From Cyanophora paradoxa CCMP329 (Eukaryota > Plantae > Glaucophyta), in contig QPMI01000272.1 in assembly GCA_004431415.1 (NCBI GenBank), positions 30,367 to 94,366 of the forward strand: DNA of 64,000 nucleotides, written 5' to 3'. The translations under genes were made by a program, and so were the position numbers. The notes beneath the pieces were generated by a model. It saw only the letters and a list, made by a program, of their open reading frames with translations, did not search any database and was not told the origin of the DNA. Shown here piece by piece: positions 23,671-36,194 of this stretch. Numbering within the stretch: position 1 is the first letter of the stretch; every line of letters starts with the position of its first letter.

Positions 23671-23926
23671 GGGGGCCGTGGCGCGGCCGGCCTCGCGCGG
23701 GGCTCGCCCCGAAGCGACAGATGGCCGGGCCAGCGCGGCGCGGGGCGGGTCTTCCGTCCTTCGCCGCGTCCGCGCTAAGCCGCACTGTCCCCTAGAGCCT
23801 GATGCACATCATAGTACGCCGCGCCGCGTCCCATCGGCCGTGCGTCTCCATGGAGCACACATTTCCCTTCCCGAACTCACCCCTCGTAGAGCGTTATTCT
23901 TCCCCTGCCCCCGGAGGCCTAGCTAT
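23671..23926 (+). repeat. Structured dispersed repeat, copy 2, just upstream of the rubredoxin-like gene
   Basis: Only a few substitutions versus copy 1 over ~193 bp, then gapped similarity (ttattc..ccctgccc..gaggcctagcta). Confidence 0.85.
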
Positions 23927-24067
23927 AGGCCCAGCTGGGAGAGCACAGGCACCGCCGCCGGACTCGTGGGGGCCCACGTGCACTGGGGGGGCGCTACACA
24001 GCGATCGGTAAAAGGGCAAACCGCTCCATCCCCCCTGGGGGGCAAGCCCGCGGTACATAATTCGGCC

Positions 24068-24949
24068 ATGGCGTTCGCAGCGCCCTGCTTCGCGGCGCGT
24101 CCGCAGGCGACGCCCAGCGTCCGGCAAGCGTCTAGCTCGCAGCTGCGCAGCCAGGAGCCCGAGCGGAGCCTGCTCAGCTCCCGTCAAAGCGGGCTCTTTG
24201 GCGCGAACCTGCGGCGGTTCGAGTCGAATGACAGCATCTCGTGGCATGCGGATGTCACTTGTATGGCCAAGCCGGCGCCGTCCTCCACTCCATCCACGTC
24301 GGCACCGGCTGCGGGGGTCCCCCCCGTGCCTCTCATCGGCGCCGGCATTGCTATCGCTGCCGCTGCATTCTACGCGTACAAGAACTGGCCCGAGAGTGAG
24401 CACGTCCCCCATTTCCGCGCAGGCGATGCTCTAGAGCTTTCCCGGCGACGCTCACCAACCGCAGTCCAGGAGAAGATCAAGAAGGGCGAGCTCTTCAAGG
24501 CGGCCCCTCCTCCGGGCTCTGTCGATGAGGACGACGACGGCGAGCCGAAGAAGGGCCCCGTGCTCTACAACTACGAGTGCACCAAGTGTGGCATGGTCAT
24601 CTTCCCGGCGCCCCACGCGAAGATCTGGACCAAGGTCCGGGCGATCCCTGGAGATCCTTACCGTCCCCCGAGTGCATAGCTGACTGGCGTCCGATCCAGT
24701 TCATGGACGAAAAGACCGGCGAGCTCCGCGAGGACTTCAAATGCACGAACCCGAAGTGCGGTGCGGGGCGTGAGTCTTTCGTGAAGAAGATACCGAAGAA
24801 GGTGCGCGCGCCTTTCCTCTTCCTCTTCCGGCGCTCACTTGCTGCTGCAGTTCGATCCGTCGCGCCCGCCGCCGCCGCCGCAACCCCGCGAGGCGCCCGC
24901 GGCTCCCCCGGCCGCCCCGACCACCGACGCTTCCGGCGAGTCTGCATAG
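24068..24949 (+). CDS. Plastid-targeted membrane-anchored rubredoxin-like protein, 4 exons
   Basis: Ser/Arg-rich presequence MAFAAPCF..VTC/M; TM helix PLIGAGIAIAAAAFYAY; YECTKCGMVIFPA..EDFKCTNPKCGAGRESF; three GT-AG introns; TAG 24947-24949. Confidence 0.8.
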
Positions 24950-25517
24950 CTTTCTCTTTTCCTCGCCGGCAGCTATGAAACAGTTTTGATAATGGTTCCT
25001 CCTGGGGTTTCTTTTCTTTCACTGTAACACGTTTTTCCTTGTCGTGGCTCTCTTGGATTAGTGTGAGTGCATTCTCATGATCAGTACATATGCTTCTAGC
25101 TTGAGAATGAACTTCGGAATTCGAAAGCTTCCTAGACTCCGAGGCTCCAATTCAAACATGGTGCCACCCGCGACTCGGCGAGACGGGCAGTGGTTGGGGC
25201 GACGCCGGGCCCCCGAAAGGAAGGAGAGGCCTAGGGAGGAACCGGGCAGATGGAAGCAATCGAAGTTTGATGCATATGGCGGCGCGCACAGGGGGCTGGC
25301 CACGGGTCCGCGGCTCGACTCCAGCCGCTTCCACTTCGAGCTGGGCTTAAGCACTGCGGCATGCGCATGCGGCTCGAGCTCATCGTCTTAGCTAAGCGCG
25401 CCAACCATAGCTAGACCCGCTTGCGCAGGCGCTGAACACTGACAAAAGCCTATGAGTTGGCAGCCAACGCAAGTTAGCCTTCGGACTTAGCTAGCAACCG
25501 GAGATAGCGAGGACCAT

Positions 25518-28500
25518 ATGGCAAACGCGTACGATAGCTACAGCTATCTCAGCGACACCCGAGGGCCGAGCGACTGGGACTTCGAGGCGTCTGGCTACAC
25601 CGGCCAGTCCGGCCTGTCGAGGGCGCGCTCGGCCGTTCCATCGGCACTTCGGGCCGCTTCCAGCCTCGGGGCCTTGATCGTCCCGCCCGCTGCCGGTCCG
25701 CAGCGCTGCCGCGCGCGCTCTCCATCTTTGCACTGACGGCCGCGGTCCCCTGCGGATGCTGCGCAGAGAGGCCAAAGACGACTACCGGCGGGCTGCGCGG
25801 GAGGGCGATCGGCGCTTCAAAGACAGGAGCCTGGGTGGGCCGCGACGGCCACGTCGAGAGCAATGTCCACTTCAAGAAGCGCTCGCAAGGAGCGCGCCTG
25901 GGCGCCAGCAGCTCGGCGGGGGGTGCCCGGCTTGCCGCCCCCGCGCTCCTGCGCCGCTGAGGCGTGCGCGCGCCCGCAGCGCTGCCGGCGGTGCCCCCGC
26001 TGATGCACCCGGAGTGGAACCGGCCCTCGACCAGCGCCTCGGCCCTCTCCATGCGGCAGCAGCTCTTCACGCCGAGCGGCACCGTGCGCCCGCGCTCGCC
26101 CCTCGCGCCCGCCGCGCGCCGACGCCCCCGCAGATCCGGCCGGCCTCGCGGGCAGCGCAGAACGCGGGGCGGCGGCGCGTGCTCCTGGGGCGCGACGAGG
26201 AGGAGGAGCAGCGGGTGCGGGGCGCCCCTCCCTCGGGCCCCCCCGTCGCCCCTGACGCCCCGAGACGCGGCAGGCTTCCTCCGCGGCGCTGCAGCTCCTG
26301 CTCCCGCCGAAGACGCCGGGGCCCGGGGCGCGCGGGGGGCCCCGCTCGGGGCCGGAGAAGCCGCCGGCCAGGCGCTCGGGGTTCGACCCGCGGAACGCGA
26401 TCCAGCAGGCGCGCCCCGGCGCCCCGCCCCGCCCCGCCAGTCTGACTTGGCGCAGATGTGGGACAAGGAGTTCGCGGCGATGATGGCCGAGTCCGAGGTC
26501 CGCGCCCCCCGGCGGGGCGACACGAAGCAAAGCGGGGCCGAGGCGGCGGGGGCGGCGGGGGCAGGTGGAGGCGCAGAAGATCGTGGACCTGCGCTCGCGC
26601 CTCCTCTCCCAGATCATCGACGAGGAGGGCTTCCACCTCGAGAAGGCCCCGCGCTCGCCCGCCCAGCCGGCCCGCGGTCGCCCCTGGGCCGAGCGGGCGG
26701 GCGGGGGCAGGTGCGGGGCGCGTTCGACGGGACGGAGGAGGCGGCGGTCGAGTTCCTCGAGGGCGCCGAGGAGTGGCTCCAGGTCGGGCCGGGCCCCCTT
26801 GCTCCACGGGGCGCCCCGCCTGTTCTGAGGGGCGGGTGGCGGGGGCAGCGGAAGGAGGACGAGGTGTGGGCGGCGGCGGGGCTGGACCCCGAGGAGCCCG
26901 TCTTCGCCCGCGAGCGCGAGCGCGTCCACTCCGCCGCCCTCGCACGCAGGTGCGGCCCGCCCCGCCCTCGGGGAGGGGCGAGGGGGCTCTGAGGGCGGGG
27001 CGGCGCGCAGGGACGAGATGGAGCAGCGGCGGGCGCTGCGGGGCGTGCGCAGGCTCAACGAGGACCCCTCCGCGGCGGCGGGCGCGGCGACCGGCCGGCG
27101 CCGTTCCAGCTTCGGCCTCGGCCTCAACGGCGGCGGCGGTCCGCTTTCGATCCCCCGTCCTCCTCCCCCTTCTCCTCCGCGACGTGAGCGGGGGCGGGGT
27201 GCAGGGGCGCGGGTGCGGCGGGGGAGCGTGATGATGCTGGAGCGGCCGGAGCCGCCGCCGCACGACGCGGGCGAGGACGCCCTCCAGCTCTCCCGCTCCT
27301 CCCTCCTCCAGGCGCGCACCCCTCCGCCCCGGCCCCGGCCCCGGCCCCGCTTCCGCCCGCCCTCGGCCTGAGCGCCGCGCGGGCAGGACGCGCTGGAGCG
27401 GGCGGGGGCCCCCGCGGACGGCCGCGAGGACACCGCCCAGGGCCAGAGGTGCGCGACCCCGCGCTTCTCGGCAGCTCGGCAGCTCGGCAGCTCGGCCTCG
27501 GTCCCTGAGGCTCGCCCGCGCGCGCCGTCCCGCAGGCAGTGGGCGGTGGAGAAGGAGATGGAGCCGGACGACCGGGCGCTGGAGCTGATGACGGCCGCCG
27601 CCGCCGCCGCCACACGCCGCGCCCTCGACGAGCTCGAGGAGCTCAAGGAGCGACGCCGGGCGGGGCACCCCGTCACCGTCCGCGTCTGCGTCTCCTGCAC
27701 CACGCGGGCCCGCCATGCTTCCGCCCCGCCCTGCCTCTTCCGCCCCTCCTCTCACGCTCTCGCGGGGCAGGACACGCACGGGGAGCGGCAGTGCCTGCAG
27801 GAGGCGAGCGGGATCCCGGCCCGGCCCAGGCGGGGCGGGGGAGGGCGGGCGGGCTGAGGGCGGGGCGGGGGCGCAGGAGGTGGCGCCGGCGCTGGACGCG
27901 TGGGGCGCGCAGTACGGCATCCGCTTCGAGTTCGTCGACGCCGCCACCCGCGGTCCGCCCCGCCCCTGCCCCGCCCCCGCCCGCGCCTGCCCTTGACGAG
28001 GCGGGCAGCGGCGCGGACGCGGGCGGAGCGGGCGCCGGAGGTGAACGCGATGTACGACGCCCTCGACCGCGTCGACGCGTGCGCCCCGCCCCGCCCCGCC
28101 CCCTCTGCACGAAGGAAGACCCCGATCTCGGGCGGGCGGGGCGCAGGTGCCGGCCCTTCTTCGTGGGGATCGTGACGCAGCGCTGGGGCGAGGTGCCCCC
28201 GCGCTACACCGACCAGCCCGGCGGCCCCGCGGCGCCCCACGCCCGCTGGCTCGACCTCTGGAAGCCAGGCTTCTCCGTGCCCGCCCCCCCGCCCGCCCCG
28301 CCCGCCCCGCCCCGCCCCGCCCCCCTCGCCTGACCCGAGGGGCCGCGGGGCAGTTCACGGCGCTGGAGCAGGTGTACGGGGCGGTGCGGCTCGGGGCGCA
28401 GCTGGCGAGCCGCCAGCACGCCTTTGTCTTCCTCCGCCACGACGGCTTCCTCCAGCGCGCCACCCGCGACCAGCACGACTACTTCCGGCGCGCCCCCCGC

Positions 28501-31500
28501 GTGCCGCTACCCCCTGGAGGGGGGTACGGCGCTCTGACGGGGGCGCAGGGACCCGCCGGAGACGCGGGCGCTGGACGAGCTCCGCCTCGACAGCCTCCGC
28601 CGCTTCCTCAAGCAGTCCCCGGGGTGCGCCCCGTACCCCTCAACCGCCGCATTCCTGTACCCCCGTGAGGTTGACCGCTGCTGTAAGGGTGGAGTGCTAC
28701 GGGTACTCGTGCGTCATGGACGACCTCTGGGACAACCTCGGCCGCGGCGGCTGGCGGTATCCCCCTTCCTCTCATCCTCCTCCCCACTTTCCAACTTTCG
28801 GCGCAGGGTGACGGGCCTCTCGGCCTTCCGCGAGTCGGTCATCGCGTGCATCAAGCGCTCCGTCATCGCCGAGTTCGCCCTCCAGGCCCGCCCCGCCCCC
28901 CCCGCCCCGCCCCGCCCCGTACCCCCCTCCCAACTCATCCCCCCCCCAGGACCTGCCGAAGGAGCACCGGATGGAGCGGGCGGCGCAGGAGGCGTTCATG
29001 CGGGAGCGGGCGGCGCCGTTCTTCGGGCGGGGGGACGCCCTGCGCGCCGTCGCGCAGTTCGTGCACCACTGGGCGCACCCCCACGGGCCCCACCAGCGCC
29101 CCGGCGACGCCGCCCTCCTCCTCGCCGGTCCGGCCCCCGCCCGCACGCCCGCCCGTGCCCTTCCGAGGCTTATTCCAGGCGGGGGGCAGGGGAGGCGGGG
29201 ATCGGGAAGACGGCGACGCTCGCGCGCTTCCTGCGCGAGGCGTGCGACTCCCGCACCGCCTTCCCCGGCGTCCGCGTGCGCGTACCCCCCCCCGTCTTTC
29301 CTCCGCATGTGCCCCCGTTCTCCGCCCCTCGAGCGCCCCCGGCAGGTGGCGTACGTCTTTGTGGGGGCCTCGGTGCAGTCCTGGTACGCCCGGGACGTCC
29401 TCAATGTGCGTAGCCCCCCGACCCCTCGCTCCCCCCGCCGTCCTGCTCGCCTCAAGGGCCGCCTCGCCTCAGTGGCTGTGCGAGGAGATGGAGGAGAAGC
29501 CGCGGCGGGCGGTGGAGACGAAGCTCCTCGACGACCGCCGCGCCCGCCCCGCCTCCCCCTCCTTCCTCGCCGCCAACCCCACCTTCGTGCCCCCGCTCCA
29601 GGCCCGCCCCGCCCCTCGCCCCTAGGGGAGGCCGGCCTGAGCTCGGGGGGCCCCGCCGCCGCGCAGGAGGTGCGGCGGCCGCAGTACGAGGAGCTGGCGA
29701 CGCGCTTCCGGGAGCTCGTGTGGCGCTACGACCAGCAGAAGCTCCTCATCGTCCTCGACGGGCCCGCCCGCCCGCCCCCGCCGCCCCGCCCCGCCCTTTC
29801 GTTCCGCTGTTCGAGCGGGGTGCGGGGCGGGGCGGGGCAGGGCGAACCAGATGGTGTTCGGGCAGGACGACTCGCCGACGGCGTGGATCCCGCACTGGGC
29901 CGACGTCTCCGGCTTCGTCAAGATCGTCGTCTCCTCCATCGACCCCGCCCCCTTCCTCGGCCGCGTCCGCCCGCCCCCATCCCCTCCTCCTCTGATCGCC
30001 CGCGCGCCCTTCTTCTGAGGCGCGGGCAGCTGACGGAGGCGCCGACGAAGTTGGCCCGCGCGCCCCCGGCGGCCCCCGCGCCGCACGGGCAGCACCAGCA
30101 CCACCACAACGAGGAGTCGAACGTGGTGGTCCTGCGCCCGCTGCTCAAGGCCGAGAGCGAGGCCCTCCTTCAGGCCGTGCGCTGCCGCCCGCCGCTCCTC
30201 CCGCCTCCGCCTCCGCCTCCGGCCCCCGCCCCCCCGCCCACGCCCACGCCCGCTCGCAGGACGAGGTCGTCGCGTCGGACAAGGACGCCGCCGTGCGCCC
30301 GCCCGCGCCCCCGCCGCGCCCACGGGCCCCCAAGGCTGAGGCCGCGCGCAGGCGATCGGGGAGGGGGCGGCGGCGAAGCGGGACGGGGGCAAGCCCCTCT
30401 ACCTGCGCCTCCTCGCCCGCGAGCTCGCCGCCACCGCCGCCCCCGTCCGCACCCTCCCCTCCCACCCCTCTCCGTTCTTCTTCTTCTCAGGGTGGGCGGG
30501 GCAGGGTGCGGGGCTGGGGGCGGCGGCGGCGGGGCTGCCGGGGACGGTGGACGGGCTGCTGGAGCGGGTGCTGGCGCGCCTCGAGTCGGTCCACCGGCGC
30601 GACGTCGTCCGCGGCACCCTCTGCCTCGTCGCCTGCGCCCGGTCCGCCCCGCCGCGCCCCGTCCAGAAGAAGACGAAGAGGCTAACGAGGGGCCGGGCGG
30701 GCGGGCGGGGGCCAGGCACGGGGTGGCGGTGCGGGACCTGCGCGAGCTCCTCGCCCTCCTCAACTGCCCCGTGCCCCAGGAGGCCCGCGCGGACGGGCGG
30801 CGGGCCGCTCCCCTCTGCGCTGACGGGCGGGGGGCAGGACCTGGACGAGCTGCTGGCGCCGGGCTCGGCGGCGGGCCTCAGCGCGCTGCTGCGGCGGAGC
30901 CCTGGGCGCGAGGAGGACGGCGGCGACCACCTCGCCTTCATCCACAGGCGCGCCCGCCCCCGAGGACCAGAGCTAGAGTCGGAGCCTCACGGGGGGGGGC
31001 GGGGCGCGCAGGGAGGTCAAGCGGGCGGTGCGCTGCCGCTACCTCCACGCCTGCACGGCCGGCGGGGACAAGGACCCCAAGGCCCGCCCCGGCCCCAAGG
31101 GCCCCCCGGGCCCCGGTGCGCCCCCCCCCGCCCCCGCCCCCGCCCCCGCCCCCTCCTCTCAGGGGCGGGCGGGGCAGGGTGCCTGGAGTACCGGGCGGGG
31201 GACGCCGACTGCGGGCACCTCGCCCCCTGGAGCGGCGCCGTCGTCCTCGGGCCCTGGGAGGACAAGGGTGCCCCCGGCGCGCCCCCCGAGCTAGCTCGCG
31301 TGCGCCGGCGCCGACGCGGGGGCGGGCGCCGAGCAGAGGGGCGCGTGCACCGGGCGTTGGCGCGGCTGTACCTCTCGCGGGCGGTGAGCCCGGCGCGGGA
31401 CCGGCTGTGGCACACGCGGCGGAGCGCGGAGTGGGTGGAGCTGCGGCGCCACCTCGCCCTCGGCCTCTCCTGGGACCTCGTCTACCGCGCCGAGAACGCC

Positions 31501-33736
31501 CTCGGTCCGCCCCGCCCCCCGCCCCCCGCCCCCCGCGCCTATCCGACTCTCTCTCTTTATATCCGACCTCCGCGGCCCCGCAGCGATCAGCGGAGCGGCG
31601 ATGGACCCGCACGAGGTAGGCCCCCGCACCCCTCGCCGGCCCCCCGCCGCCCCCTCCTCACTCCCGCGCCCCTCTCTCGCAGGTTTGGGTGCGCGGCCTC
31701 GAGCCGGATCGGCTCTCGCGTGCCCCGCGCCCGTAACCCTCCGCTTTCGCCGCAGTCGATCGTGACGTCGCTCCACCGGCGGGCCCCGTTCCTCGCCGGT
31801 CCGCACCCCGCGCCTCGGGCCGGGACCCGGGGCCCGCCTCACGCGCCCGCACGCAGGCTTCCCGGGGTACTCGCACGTGCCGCCGGGCGTGCCGACGCCG
31901 CGGGAAGCCCTCGGGAGCCGCGCGGCCGCCCCCGTCGCGGGCCCCGGCGCCCCGGAGCGGGAGCGGGACTCGCCGCCGCGGGCGCGCCCCTCCAAGTCCG
32001 TTGGCATCAACTCCCGCCTGGACCTCGGCCCCGAGGCGCGGGGCGGCGGCGGTGGCGGCTCCGCTGCCGCGCCCCCCTCCTCCTCCCTGAACCTCGCCGG
32101 CGCCGGGCGGGCCGCGGGGGCGCCCTCGAAGCCGCGCTCGACGCTGGGGGTGGGGGGCGGGGCGGCGGGGCGGCGTGCTGCGGCCGACCTGCGCCCCGCC
32201 TACGCCGACGAGCCGGGCCTCCTCCGCCTCGCCAGCCTCCAGTACCCCGTGCGCGTCCTCCCGCTCCCCCCCCCCCCCATGTACCCCGGCCAGGCTCCGA
32301 CGCCCCCGGGGGCACGGGCAGTGGATCGGGGCGGACGCGCGGGCGCTCTCGGGGGCGCTGGCGGAGGACCTGCCGCTCGCCCTCCTCGACCTCTCTGGCA
32401 ACCCCGCCCTATCCCGCGAGCACGTGCGCACCCCGCCCCCCCACCCGCCCCGAGCCCCGACCGTTTGCCCGGCCGCCGGCCCCGCGCGCCGCTCTGACGC
32501 GGGGGGCGGCCAGCTTCGGGAGATCTTTTCGTCGCTGCGGGAGAACCGGACGCTGCGGACGCTCTGCGTGGCGGGGACGCGCCCCGGGGAGGCGGCCGTC
32601 GCGGAGCTCGCGTCGGCCCTCGCGGAGAACGGGACGCTGACGGAGCTCGACCTCTCCGACTGCGGCCTGCGCGGGGAGGCGGCGGCGGCGCTGGCGCGGC
32701 CGCTGGAGAGCCGCTACTGCGCCCTCCGCTCCCTCCGCCTCTCCCGCTGCGCCATCGCCGACGACGGGTCCGCCCGGGCCCCCACCGGAGAGGCGCCTCT
32801 CGCGCTGGGCTCTGAGGGGGCGCGGGGGCAGGTGCGCGGCGCTGGCGGGGGTGCTGCCGCGGGCGGCGCGCCTCACGGCGCTGGACGTGTCGGCGAACGG
32901 GATCACGCACCGGACGGCGGTGGCCCTCTTCAAGGCCCTCGGCGAGAACGCGACCCTCAAGCACCTCGCCCTCGCCGCCAACCCCATCGGCGTCCGCCCC
33001 GCCCCGCCCCGCACGCCCCGCGCGGCGCGGCCGGCCGACTCGGGGCGGGGCAGGACGAGCCGCTCTCGTACCTGGCGGCGAGCCTGCGGCAGAACGGGAC
33101 GCTCACGGGGCTCGTCTTCGGGAGCCAGTCCGCCGGCCACGCCGGCATCGGCTGCACCTCCGAGGCGCGGCCCCCTCCCCCCCCCCCCCCCCCCCCCCCG
33201 CCCCCTCCCCGCCCCCGCCGAGGCCTGGGGCGCGGGCGCAGGGGGCGTCGGCGATCGCGGAGGCGCTGGAGCAGAACCGCGCCCTCACCTCCCTCGACCT
33301 CGACAGCAACGGGGTGGACGACCGGGGGGCGGCCGCCTTCGTCCGCGTCCTCCGCTGGAACCGCTCCATCATTCACCTCGACCTCACCGTCCGCCCCGCG
33401 CCCCGTCCCCCGCCCCGCCTCCTCGCCCCATGCCCGGCGCAGGAGAACCGGTGCGGGGAGGAGGCGCTGGCGGCCGTCCGAGACGCCCTCCGCCTCAACC
33501 GCGAGTCCGCCCCGCTCCCGCCCCTCTCCAATCCGCTTCGGGCCCTAACGGGGCCCCCCAGGTACTTCTGGCGGCGGGACGCGCAGCGCGGGGCCGCCGG
33601 GGCGGTCCCCTCCGCGAGCCTCGCCTCCGTGCGGCGCCCCTCGGGGGCCTCCCGCCCCTCCTCCCTCCTCGCCCTCGGCGCCCCCCAAGCGTCCCGCCCA
33701 TCTTCCTTCGCCGCCCTCGGCGCGCCCCAAGCGTAG
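25518..33736 (+). CDS. DUF4062-like + TEP1/NWD-type NACHT (STAND) NTPase + RI-type leucine-rich repeats (NLR-like architecture)
   Basis: DUF4062 VRVCVSCTTR|DTHGER..FEFVD..CRPFFVGIVTQRWG..FTALE (27670-28400); Walker A GEAGIGKT (~29190); Walker B LLIVLDG (~29741); GKPLYL, LPGTVDGLLERVLARLE; ~9 LRRs such as LAENGTLTELDLSDCGL and LEQNRALTSLDLDSNGV (32330-33500). Continuity of the N-terminal exons is less certain. Confidence 0.8.
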
Positions 33737-34392
33737 GCTGCAGCGTGGCTGTGACCGTCTCGGCTCCCGCCGGCCGGGCTTGTTCGAACGTTAATGGAAC
33801 CGTGAGAACCTGAGCCGCTGCAGGCCTTGGGTGCATGTGCACGCGCAGCAGGTGTTCAATCAGTGTTCGTAATTGGCAAAAGCAACACATTTTTGAATTC
33901 GATTGCCGAGTTCAAACCTGGTTCTAGTCACTGATTTTCGAGTTTAGTCACTGAATTTGAAGCTGAATGCCGAGATTTGAAGGCCGAGATAATGCCGAGG
34001 TGACAAGAACGGAAATTCGAATGAGGTGTAGGACATCGGGATCGATATCTTGACATAATGAAATCGGGATTCCGCGATGACCTAACGCTAACTGCAAGCT
34101 GAGAAGCCTTAGTCACATAGAAGTTACAAGATCATAGTCATGATCGCTAATCACAGCGCAGCAGGTACTACGTTCAAAACAAGCTCTCTCGTAACTTTCC
34201 GATGATAATGCTCTAGTGACAGAGGGAATAAATTTTAGATATAGCAGTCACCGAGAAAATCGTTACCGGATGAATGAGAAGCCGTAATAAGGGAAGCTGC
34301 AGCCATGAACTAGTTGAAATGCGAGGTACGATAGGGGCTTGGGCGTGGAAATGCATGGAAAGCGTCGGGGACATAAATTGCAGCGGCGGGCG

Positions 34393-36194
34393 CTAGCCGG
34401 CGACGTGGCGGCGCATGCCCGAGGGGGAGGCGCCGCCCGAGGCGACAGCGATGGCGCGCTGGGCGGGGTTGAGGGGGGCAGGGGCGACGAGGATCGGCGC
34501 GGGGCTCGAGCCGCTCGCCGTGCGCACGGTGGGGGCGTTGGTGGGGGTCGTCGGGGCGGAGCCCGGGGAGGGGTGGGGGAGGATGGAGGTCGGGGTGGGG
34601 ACGCTGATGGAGAGGCCGTGGTCGAAGGCGACGCTCGTGGCCGCCACGACGACCGAGGCCGCGTGGGGCGTCCCCGGCGTGTTCCGCCCCGAGCGCGGGC
34701 TCCGGCTCGAGCCCCGCGCCGCCGCCGGCGACACCGGCGTCGTCATCCCGACCTGGGGCGGCACGGGCGAGCCGCGCGCCTCCACCTGCGCGCCCCGCCG
34801 CACCTCCTGCGTCCTCGCGTCCTCCTGCGACTCCTGCTTCGCCTGCGGAAGGGCGCGCCCCGCCGTCAGAGGGTGCCGCCGGGGCGGGGCGGGGCGGGGC
34901 GGGGCGGGGAGGTCACCATGAAGGAGCTGTAGAGCTGCGAGGTGAGGTCGAAGCGGCACGTCGGACACGCGAGCTTGAGCGTGAGCCACGAGTCCGTGCA
35001 GCTCTTGTGGAACCTGCCCGCGCGGTCGCCGCCGGTAAGGGCGCGCGCGCGCGGGGCGGCGGGGAGCGGCGGGGGGCGGGGCGGGCGCACTTGTGGCGGC
35101 AGGGGAGGATGCGGACGTCCTCGCCGACCTCGTACTCGCTGAGGCAGATCGAGCACGTCAGGTCGTCCGGCGCCGCCTCCACCATCGCCCGCGTCAGCTT
35201 CGTCGCCTCGCAGCTGTCCACGAGCGCTGCGGCGCCCGTGAGCGCGGGCCCGGGACGGTGGAGGGGGCGCGCGCGGCCGGCGGCATGCGCACCTTGCCTC
35301 CCGAGCAAGTGTACGACCTTCACGTGCGAGTGCGCGAGCGCCAGGTCCAGCGGCGTCTCGTTCTTCTTGTTCTTCACTTTCGGGTCGGCGCCGCGCAGCA
35401 GGAGCCACTCGCACACGACGTCCTGCCCAGTCGCTGCCGCCACGCTGCGAGAAAAAAGGAATCAACGCCAGAAAACCGCTATCCGGGGTCGCGCGTACTG
35501 TAACGGCGTGTCTCCGTGCTTGTTCGCTATTGCGACGCTGGCGCCGCGCTCCAGGAGCAGTTGTGTGCACGCGTGATGCCTGCGAGAGATGTGAGGCATA
35601 CGAAACGTGCGGATCGAGCCGGCACGTACCGGTAGCACACGGCGCAGTGCAGCGGGGTGCTGAATCGGGCGTGAATTCGATGCGAGAGCGAGGGACCGCG
35701 GATAGCACGCACTTTCCCTTCTCCTTTTCACGAATGTCGATCTTCACGTTGGACTGATCAAGAATGAACTTCGCACAAGATAGGGACCCATATCCGCAAG
35801 CTGCAGAGGTGTGATCAACGCGGTATCAAGCGGGCGCCGCGCGGGAAGCTACCGTAGTGCAGAGCGCTTGCACCAAACATGTCTGGATGGCATATGAGCG
35901 GCGCCCGGGGCGGCGCGCGCGCGCGAGCAGCGCTTACCATACTGATTCACGTTCTTCGATTTTGCGACCTCTTTCTGCAGCCTTGCGAGGTCATCGTGCC
36001 TGAGAAAGCAGCATGAGTAAGGGCGATCGTGGGGAGGCTGCGGGGAACTGCCCGCAGCCAGATCGATTCGACACGCGCCCAGGGGTTGCGCGGCGAGCCC
36101 CGCGCAACCGCGGCGGCAGGGGGATGAATACGCATGCTTAAATGGCAAGAGCGACTCACCGGCAAGCGGCGTGCATCGACCCGCTGGCGCCCAT
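34393..36194 (-). CDS. Ankyrin-repeat RING-H2 E3 ubiquitin ligase with N-myristoylation-like start
   Basis: MGASGS start; ankyrin motifs ASALHYA, STPLHCA, GDTPLHVA, NETPLDLA; RING CSICLSEY..LPCRHK|FHKSCTDSW..CPTCR. Confidence 0.88.

Follow-up and report, generated by a model that had tools for sequence, protein, structure and literature searches.

A single spliced and expressed gene of the glaucophyte Cyanophora paradoxa CCMP329 was found to encode a protein laid out like a receptor with a nucleotide-binding part and leucine-rich repeats (NLR). The gene lies at positions 25518 to 33736 of the plus strand in a stretch of 64,000 nucleotides (GenBank assembly GCA_004431415.1, contig QPMI01000272.1, positions 30,367 to 94,366), which we call the window and whose numbering is used throughout. 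We are highly confident of the gene itself and of the order of its parts, i.e. an N-terminal extension of about 460 residues, a DUF4062 domain, a NACHT-type NTPase of the STAND class (signal transduction ATPases with numerous domains), a linker that is helical and of low complexity, and then about ten leucine-rich repeats (LRRs) of ribonuclease-inhibitor (RI) type. When the gene, its domain order and its action as an NLR-like switch with NAD hydrolase (NADase) output are taken together as one statement, we regard that statement as standing on even ground between right and wrong. Receptor function and NADase output may reasonably be inferred from the residues retained and from the biology of the family.

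Gene structure and expression

The G+C content is about 80% across the region and falls to 53-65% where the gene begins and where it ends. All reading frames stay open for hundreds of codons here, so lists of open reading frames were useless and the gene was rebuilt from evidence. RNA joints were combined with a dynamic programme that scores splice sites and codons while keeping the frame, its scores being trained on the RNA-verified parts; for the 5' exons, upstream of position 27740, the borders come from this programme alone. The resulting model has 48 exons and 47 introns and runs from an ATG at 25518 to a stop codon at 33734-33736. Its coding sequence of 5,136 nt specifies a protein of about 1,711 residues. 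Introns are 47-90 nt long (median 64) with a G+C content of 82%; 35 of them are of the GT-AG and 12 of the GC-AG type, with the donor consensus G|G(T/C)(G/C)CGCCC and the acceptor consensus GGGGCGCAG|G. At third codon positions of the exons, G+C (GC3) reaches 0.97. A C-rich 5' half followed by a G-rich 3' half was seen in only 17 of the introns.

The stretch was matched by seven RNA-like sequencing runs and one unspliced, DNA-like run. Four runs (X1, X4, X6 and X8) were compared with positions 27740-33739 of the window, contigs of the first three being spliced and those of X8 unspliced. X8 carries one additional C after position 29284, within a C-run of an intron; the sample and the assembly of the window differ in length at this point. 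The spliced contigs, coming from three runs and two studies, tile the gene from its DUF4062 part, by way of the NACHT and LRR exons, into the 3' untranslated region, which extends at least 148 nt beyond 33739 in RNA. Record 6 of X6 (3,590 nt) covers 28055-32018, i.e. from the DUF4062 exons into the exon at 31857-32248, and its depth of 70.6 is common to every joint from 28078 to 31856. Record 2 of X1 (2,473 nt) begins at about 30223, in the exon preceding the PLYL exon, and proceeds via every LRR exon to 33739 and a further 148 nt, while record 1 of the same run extends upstream of 28078 by 1,698 exonic nt, a length sufficient for the N-terminal part. As one set of spliced contigs leads from DUF4062 through the LRR exons, the LRRs are not a separate gene. 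The first-pass annotation, made from the letters of the window alone, had considered that the LRR exons (32330-33736) might be one, and the spliced contigs speak for a single gene.

When each of the 15 listed joints is shifted within its stated ambiguity, it delimits an intron of 50-79 nt with GT-AG or GC-AG borders, and one frame is kept throughout. Exonic lengths of the model and of the RNA contigs agree exactly between the coordinates 29190-30292 (674 nt), 32249-32513 (102 nt) and 32992-33561 (320 nt). One RNA joint, 31617>31755 with 'TTG' between, appeared odd at first sight. It is accounted for exactly by a micro-exon of 6 nt (31683-31688, GTTTGG, encoding Val-Trp) between two ordinary introns, 31616-31682 and 31689-31755.

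The X4 and X6 contigs break within a GGC repeat (approximately 32018-32150) of exon 31857-32248. Since this exon is contiguous both in the genome and in record 2 of X1, with zero differences, the break was caused by assembly and does not mark the border of a gene. At 29620-29790 and 32018-32060, both GC-rich and of low complexity, only part of the length of many RNA contigs aligns, with loose ends left over. This indicates that other transcripts of the genome share such sequence, and these may be paralogues or merely repeats. In the window itself, tblastn with the public protein described below revealed no second copy of the gene.

The public protein model

The gene is already present in public annotation as a nearly identical model. 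A search with the read-through of 30352-30639 retrieved, at 100% identity, the 1,749-residue EukProt protein tig00001155_g7326.t1 (P0001), and for 46 of the 48 model exons the encoded peptide was found exactly in it; it also contains the micro-exon. The two models differ in that P0001 reads intron 25607-25663 as coding, has nine additional residues (147-155) and two shorter exon ends. In addition, its residues 1011-1030 represent the 60-nt intron 30445-30504 read as coding; this intron is removed in spliced contigs of three RNA runs. Searches were carried out with exon references, in-frame read-through references and P0001, and all whole-protein analyses and residue numbers given here refer to P0001. 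An exhaustive search of representatives with 30352-30639 returned only P0001 and low-complexity matches to the translated intron, with no distant relative.

The DUF4062 domain

The domain following the N-terminal extension (27678-28487, approximately residues 464-620) is encoded by the exons 27536-27707, 27771-27818, 27877-27952, 28009-28078, 28147-28276 and 28354-28487. Pfam did not detect DUF4062 or NACHT exon by exon or on stop-free pieces; the exons are too short, and both domains were therefore missed in such scans, which apart from LRR_6 gave a weak P-loop signal only. On the whole protein both scores stay below the Pfam thresholds (see below), so that the identity of these domains rests on homology to family members.

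This homology was apparent from a word search of a library of 5.8 billion proteins with residues 462-700. Thirty-nine proteins were retrieved, every one of which carries the DUF4062 family PF13271 and most of which carry PF05729 too, the best match being P0023 (E 1e-11). Nearly all of them join NACHT to tetratricopeptide repeats (TPR), being NPHP3-like and in many cases from bacterial metagenome bins, or to WD40 repeats, as in P0023. A wider query (residues 455-1260) had been swamped by low-complexity words, with 2 matches, and was narrowed to the range given. With P0022, a DUF4062-P-loop-TPR protein whose own DUF4062 scores 52.5 bits, BLASTP produced a collinear alignment of 364 columns over DUF4062, linker and P-loop (E 2e-17). 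The four exons (28549-29127) that link DUF4062 to the P-loop are likewise collinear with the linker of the DUF4062-NACHT relatives.

In an alignment of 40 sequences, all 15 invariant DUF4062 columns were kept. For the residues of the human TEP1 domain, PDB chain 11gz_A served as a bridge, its numbering being offset by 893 from that of TEP1; R908, R954 and R976 are then all Arg, and the second Glu of T-E-M-E corresponds to E1008. According to the alignment and this mapping, Arg473 in S-C-T-T-R-D (codon 27705-27707), Arg545 in Q-R-W-G (28181-28183) and the invariant Glu581 of S-x-T-x-x-E (28366-28368) are the equivalents of R908, R976 and E1008, respectively. The segment 28148-28276 also had the TIR-like domain of TEP1 (11gz_A) as its top PDB match, at E 0.16. 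An AlphaFold2 model of the domain (predicted local distance difference test, pLDDT, 77.9) matched DUF4062 clusters with TM scores of 0.72-0.81, partly by construction, as the alignment behind the model was made of DUF4062 proteins. Taken together, homology supports the view that the module is a strongly diverged DUF4062, followed by the type of NACHT that accompanies DUF4062.

DUF4062 has meanwhile been demonstrated to be a family of TIR-like NADases (bioRxiv 10.64898/2026.05.01.722283), which bears out the link to TIR-like folds made at first pass. NADase activity of TEP1 requires E1008 and is reduced by R908A and R976A (10.64898/2026.05.01.722283). Judging from the residues kept, the DUF4062 domain of the Cyanophora protein is probably NAD-cleaving.

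The NACHT NTPase

The nucleotide-binding domain comprises seven exons (29190-30292) whose 674 nt equal the length in record 6 of X6. Walker A, GEAGIGKT, is located in exon 29190-29275 (Lys761, codon 29207-29209), Walker B, LLIVLD, lies in exon 29667-29761 (Asp877, codon 29757-29759), with the G of LLIVLDG running on into the exon that starts at 29841, and the W-I-P motif (AWIPHW) is found in exon 29841-29964; the domain also contains the strand VKIVVSS. The adjoining PLYL helix and winged-helix part (three exons, 30352-30782, with joints in three RNA runs) has KPLYL in exon 30352-30444 and LPGTVDGLLERVLARLE at 30505-64. It further contains KPLYLRLLAREL, LPGTV..LLERVLARLE and LCLVACARHGVAVRDLRELL and aligns to the consensus NPLYLKILLDELR / ARRGLTE.EL, the lead in the Atlas being WHD_NWD1 (0.88). 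Thus, the motifs on which the first-pass annotation had relied (GEAGIGKT, LLIVLDG, WIP, PLYL and LPxTV..LE) were all recovered on the plus strand and in the order it gave.

GEAGIGKT, LLIVLD, AWIPH and KPLYLRLL align with invariant or nearly invariant columns of the family, and P0001 agrees with the family at 62 of the 128 columns conserved at 90% or more. Two general Pfam families passed their cut-offs, AAA_16 with 33.1 bits (cut-off 32.6) and AAA_22 with 28.1 bits (cut-off 27). The predicted structure of the NTPase (pLDDT 69) matched Apaf-1, Cdc6/Orc1, ZAR1, NRC2/4 and NLRP2/7 in Foldseek (E 2e-7 to 1e-5, 430-480 columns). As modelled, it is a STAND fold, a match that does not distinguish NACHT from NB-ARC.

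To which NACHT lineage the NTPase belongs was judged with two hidden Markov models (HMMs), one built from the NACHT regions of the DUF4062 relatives with P0001 excluded, the other from NACHT-LRR proteins; the query, residues 690-1215, was the NTPase without DUF4062. In hmmsearch it scored 62.7 bits (E 1e-21) with the DUF4062-group profile and 3.1 bits with the NLR-group profile, while the NACHT-LRR proteins reached at most 8.3 bits with the DUF4062-group profile. In a quick maximum-likelihood tree, P0001 fell within the DUF4062 group, together with P0022 and P0023 (SH-aLRT 97 and 99). However, the branch of the NTPase is very long (3.78 substitutions per site), and a grouping with NLR-type NACHTs was not rejected by the approximately unbiased (AU) test (p 0.59). 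For these two reasons we did not rely on the tree and used the comparison of profile scores instead. This comparison supports an NTPase of the TEP1/NWD1/NPHP3 type, and not of the NLR lineage.

The LRR region

The repeats occupy residues 1404-1692 (32219 to approximately 33564) and are encoded by the end of the exon that terminates at 32248, by exons 32322-32423, 32514-32767, 32832-32991, 33054-33164, 33242-33388 and 33443-33504, and by the start of exon 33562-33736. LRR_6 scored 31.4 bits on the exon references (cut-off 23.4) and 53.6 bits on P0001. PDB matches of these exons included designed RI-like LRRs, ribonuclease inhibitor, NLRP14, NLRP1 and NLRP3 (E 7e-16 to 1e-5), and DRC5 and LRRC34 also appeared among the matches. 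LRRs of NLRP proteins and of fish NLRs were among the relatives. By similarity, the repeats are thus of the RI class, as had been proposed, and come after the NACHT; the earlier count of about nine units of 28 residues is revised to approximately ten of 28-29 residues, one being of 35.

Comparison with known proteins

LRR_6 was present in none of the 39 DUF4062 relatives, and DUF4062 in none of the 36 LRR relatives obtained by word search. The nearest Atlas clusters combine DUF4062 with NPHP3_N and are without LRRs. In the literature, no paper was found that describes a protein with DUF4062, NACHT and LRR together, or that deals with NACHT proteins of Cyanophora. The combination of DUF4062, NACHT and RI-type LRRs thus occurred in no other protein or paper recovered by searches that were limited in word content and length.

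The closest comparison is provided by TEP1, NWD1, NWD2, NPHP3 and the bacterial DUF4062-NACHT-TPR proteins. These share with the Cyanophora protein the N-terminal DUF4062, the collinear linker, NACHT and winged helix, together with the motifs GxxGxGK[S/T], hhhhD, W-x-P and (N/K)PLYL, the candidate catalytic Glu and the two Arg. They differ from it in ending in WD40 or TPR, where RI-type LRRs are found here, and in the N-terminal extension of about 460 residues present here. Identity between P0001 and the DUF4062-NACHT relatives is 23-32%; P0001 is without D-L-R-W-G and stays below the Pfam thresholds. One relative, P0032 (1,155 residues, Logan assembly), carries canonical TIR domains (PF01582, PF13676) besides DUF4062 and NACHT in the precomputed Pfam list.

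With animal NLRs (NLRC3, NLRC5, NLRP), the order of effector, NACHT and RI-type LRRs is shared. In contrast to them, the NTPase scores only 3.1 bits on the NLR-group HMM, has no BLAST match and lacks the NOD2_WH and NLRC4_HD modules, and the effector is a TIR-like DUF4062 instead of CARD, PYD or BIR. On these grounds the protein would fall outside the animal NLR family, the LRRs alone resembling those of NLRs. The layout of NACHT plus RI-type LRRs, which the first-pass annotation regarded as that of animal NLRs, is indeed shared with them but is not confined to animals, for it is also predicted in P0074 (Cymbomonas CYMTET_36420), P0064, P0078 and P0093, which come from algae, protists or metagenomes. 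These proteins have no DUF4062, their NACHT belongs to a different lineage, and they showed no similarity to residues 400-1390 of P0001. P0074, from the green alga Cymbomonas tetramitiformis, has 3,060 residues and joins TCAD9 to NACHT and to over 15 LRRs of RI type.

The logic of the protein would be like that of plant TNLs (TIR-NB-ARC-LRR receptors, for example RPP1 and ROQ1), with an N-terminal NAD-cleaving domain of TIR type, a STAND switch and a C-terminal LRR sensor. However, DUF4062 is not a canonical TIR, NACHT is not NB-ARC and the RI-type repeats are not plant-type LRRs. On a comparison that covered fold matches, the relation is one of analogy, not membership, and in its layout the protein might be seen as a functional analogue of TNLs derived from unrelated TIR-like and NTPase lineages. 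The bacterial DUF4062 proteins Swarozyc and Evangelion, which act in anti-phage defence, share the DUF4062 core and the conserved catalytic Glu, and in both cases the core is presumed to be switched on by an accessory sensing region. Their auxiliary domains are compact, with no NACHT or LRR, whereas the protein described here has no PADLOC match and lacks the Phe that corresponds to F11 of Eva01.

As had been stated at first pass, DUF4062-NACHT modules normally end in WD40 or TPR, and among the relatives retrieved here never in LRRs. Because of this, and because the LRRs are of the RI class and the whole is one transcript, independent assembly of the layout of effector, NTPase and sensor is the best reading, in agreement with the first-pass proposal; the separate relatives of the N-terminal module and of the LRRs, and a NACHT not of the NLR lineage, support it. 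Most likely, RI-type LRRs took the place of the TPR or WD40 sensor in a DUF4062-NACHT gene.

A proposed model of an NLR-like switch and its alternatives

The proposed model treats the protein as an NLR-like molecular switch. The arc of LRRs would keep NACHT closed and ADP-bound, and would bind a ligand or a guarded partner. Upon release, nucleotide exchange at the intact Walker A/B site and oligomerisation could follow, bringing the N-terminal TIR-like domains together into an active NAD(P)+ hydrolase. The output might then be NAD+ depletion or a nucleotide signal, serving defence, stress responses or the control of cell death.

Several observations weigh against this model. DUF4062 (PF13271) scores 16.9 bits at residues 465-551 (E 0.0075), below the cut-off of 24.7. 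Within the domain, V-D-A-A-T-R stands in place of the nearly invariant D-L-R-W-G of the relatives, and V-C-V-S-C-T-T-R-D instead of V-F-V-S-S-T-F-R-D, with Cys at the conserved Phe. This Phe, that of V-F-x-S-S in the relatives, occupies the position which the Evangelion preprint highlights as F11 of Eva01. T-A-L-E, in which Ala occupies the first Glu of T-E-L-E, is a further deviation, which also occurs in P0025, a bona fide member of the family. In VIA, the top matches of the DUF4062 model (nucleoside deoxyribosyltransferase, NDT, with Z 7.3, TIRAP 6.6, the TIR of MyD88 6.1 and ThsB 5.2) all stay under the safe level of 8, and a Foldseek search of the PDB yielded only generic Rossmann-like folds at E ~1e-2, none of them under 1e-3. 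PADLOC yielded no model match. The NTPase branch is very long, as described above, and no orthologue or paralogue of the same layout was obtained from two word- and length-limited searches of the 5.8 billion proteins. NWD1 and NPHP3 have been linked to non-immune roles. Finally, purified human NWD1, NWD2 and NPHP3 are NADase-inactive despite their DUF4062 (10.64898/2026.05.01.722283).

Profile scans upheld the domain names of the first-pass annotation only in part, since LRR_6 passed its cut-off, whereas NACHT (17.0 bits, cut-off 26.7) as well as DUF4062 fell below theirs and NPHP3_N was not reported for P0001.

With DUF4062 so diverged, a non-catalytic scaffold stays a serious rival, although we consider it rather unlikely. 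The gene would then encode a non-immune scaffold or regulatory STAND protein, i.e. a lineage-specific relative of NPHP3, NWD1 or TEP1 in flagellar, ribonucleoprotein or metabolic assemblies, with a silent DUF4062 and LRRs that bind a fixed partner. The nearest relatives are indeed NPHP3-like and NWD1-like, and the inactivity of NWD1, NWD2 and NPHP3 in vitro and the loss of D-L-R-W-G and of the conserved Phe would be expected of such a protein. RI-type LRR proteins are common in axonemes (DRC5 and LRRC34 being among the PDB matches), and the host is biflagellate. However, the residues required for catalysis in TEP1 are kept, and the failure of both word searches to recover an orthologue of the same layout argues against a conserved housekeeping gene; a widespread orthologue, which had been named as an alternative at first pass, was not encountered in these word-limited and length-limited searches of the 5.8 billion proteins.

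It is quite improbable that the gene is a decaying or fast-drifting one, specific to the lineage and still transcribed in an open frame, but with ancestral activities no longer under selection. The long branch, the sub-threshold scores of both DUF4062 and NACHT, and the long low-complexity inserts in exon 31857-32248 and in the tail would fit such a history. Against this, the frame is unbroken over 48 exons and 47 introns, GC3 of the exons is 0.97, the 15 invariant DUF4062 columns and Walker A/B are kept in full, and spliced RNA was present in three runs.

It can scarcely be believed that adjoining DUF4062-NACHT and LRR genes were fused, whether in gene prediction or through RNA contigs that are chimeric. 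In the GGC-rich part of exon 31857-32248, X4 and X6 contigs break or continue into unlike sequence, this part is crossed by record 2 of X1 only, and Logan contigs may be chimeric at repeats. However, the break lies inside one exon, for which genome and X1 record do not differ (31856-32248), the frame is open through it and through every junction on either side, and from the NACHT part to the LRR part neither a stop nor an intergenic fall in G+C nor a separate start occurs.

Remaining parts of the protein and neighbouring sequences

The whole coding span (25518-33736, plus strand) is thus defined by RNA joints and the splice and codon model, together with P0001. Its first part, 25518-27677, encodes the N-terminal extension, which is acidic and helical-looking and is predicted by the model, its peptides being also found in P0001; no Pfam family matched these approximately 460 residues. 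The winged helix is followed by a helical region (30838-31798, from RNA joints and the model) that includes the micro-exon. A Gly/Ala/Pro-rich linker of low complexity (31857-32218) then takes up most of the 392-nt exon 31857-32248 and is contiguous in record 2 of X1. Residues 1100-1400 of P0001 had no match to a Pfam family. Behind the repeats, a Ser/Ala/Pro-rich C-terminal tail with the stop codon (33565-33736) completes the protein.

Downstream, a neighbour on the minus strand (34866-35750) encodes ankyrin repeats and a RING-H2 finger (zf-RING_11 31.4 bits, Ank 27.6 bits) and resembles an E3 ligase. Upstream, open frames on the plus strand (23678-24979) contain a Cys-rich, zinc-ribbon-like stretch without a Pfam match.

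Implications

If the model of an NLR-like switch holds, the logic of an effector, a STAND switch and an LRR sensor, with an effector that cleaves NAD, would have been reached from a third start, namely the DUF4062-NACHT module of TEP1 and NWD1. Such a design would thereby be placed in a deep-branching unicellular lineage of archaeplastids in which no NLR has been studied. In its fullest form, which we put forward tentatively and think doubtful, a glaucophyte alga might have built a working TIR-like NADase-NACHT-LRR immune receptor, a third convergent design beside TNLs and NLRs, by grafting RI-type LRRs onto the ancient TEP1/NWD1-type module, within a diverse STAND repertoire giving pathogen-triggered NAD+ depletion or cell death. 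The gene would also offer a simple experimental test of whether eukaryotic DUF4062-NACHT proteins beyond TEP1 are ligand-activated NADases. Furthermore, it would add to the case for an unusually varied repertoire of STAND receptors in Cyanophora paradoxa.

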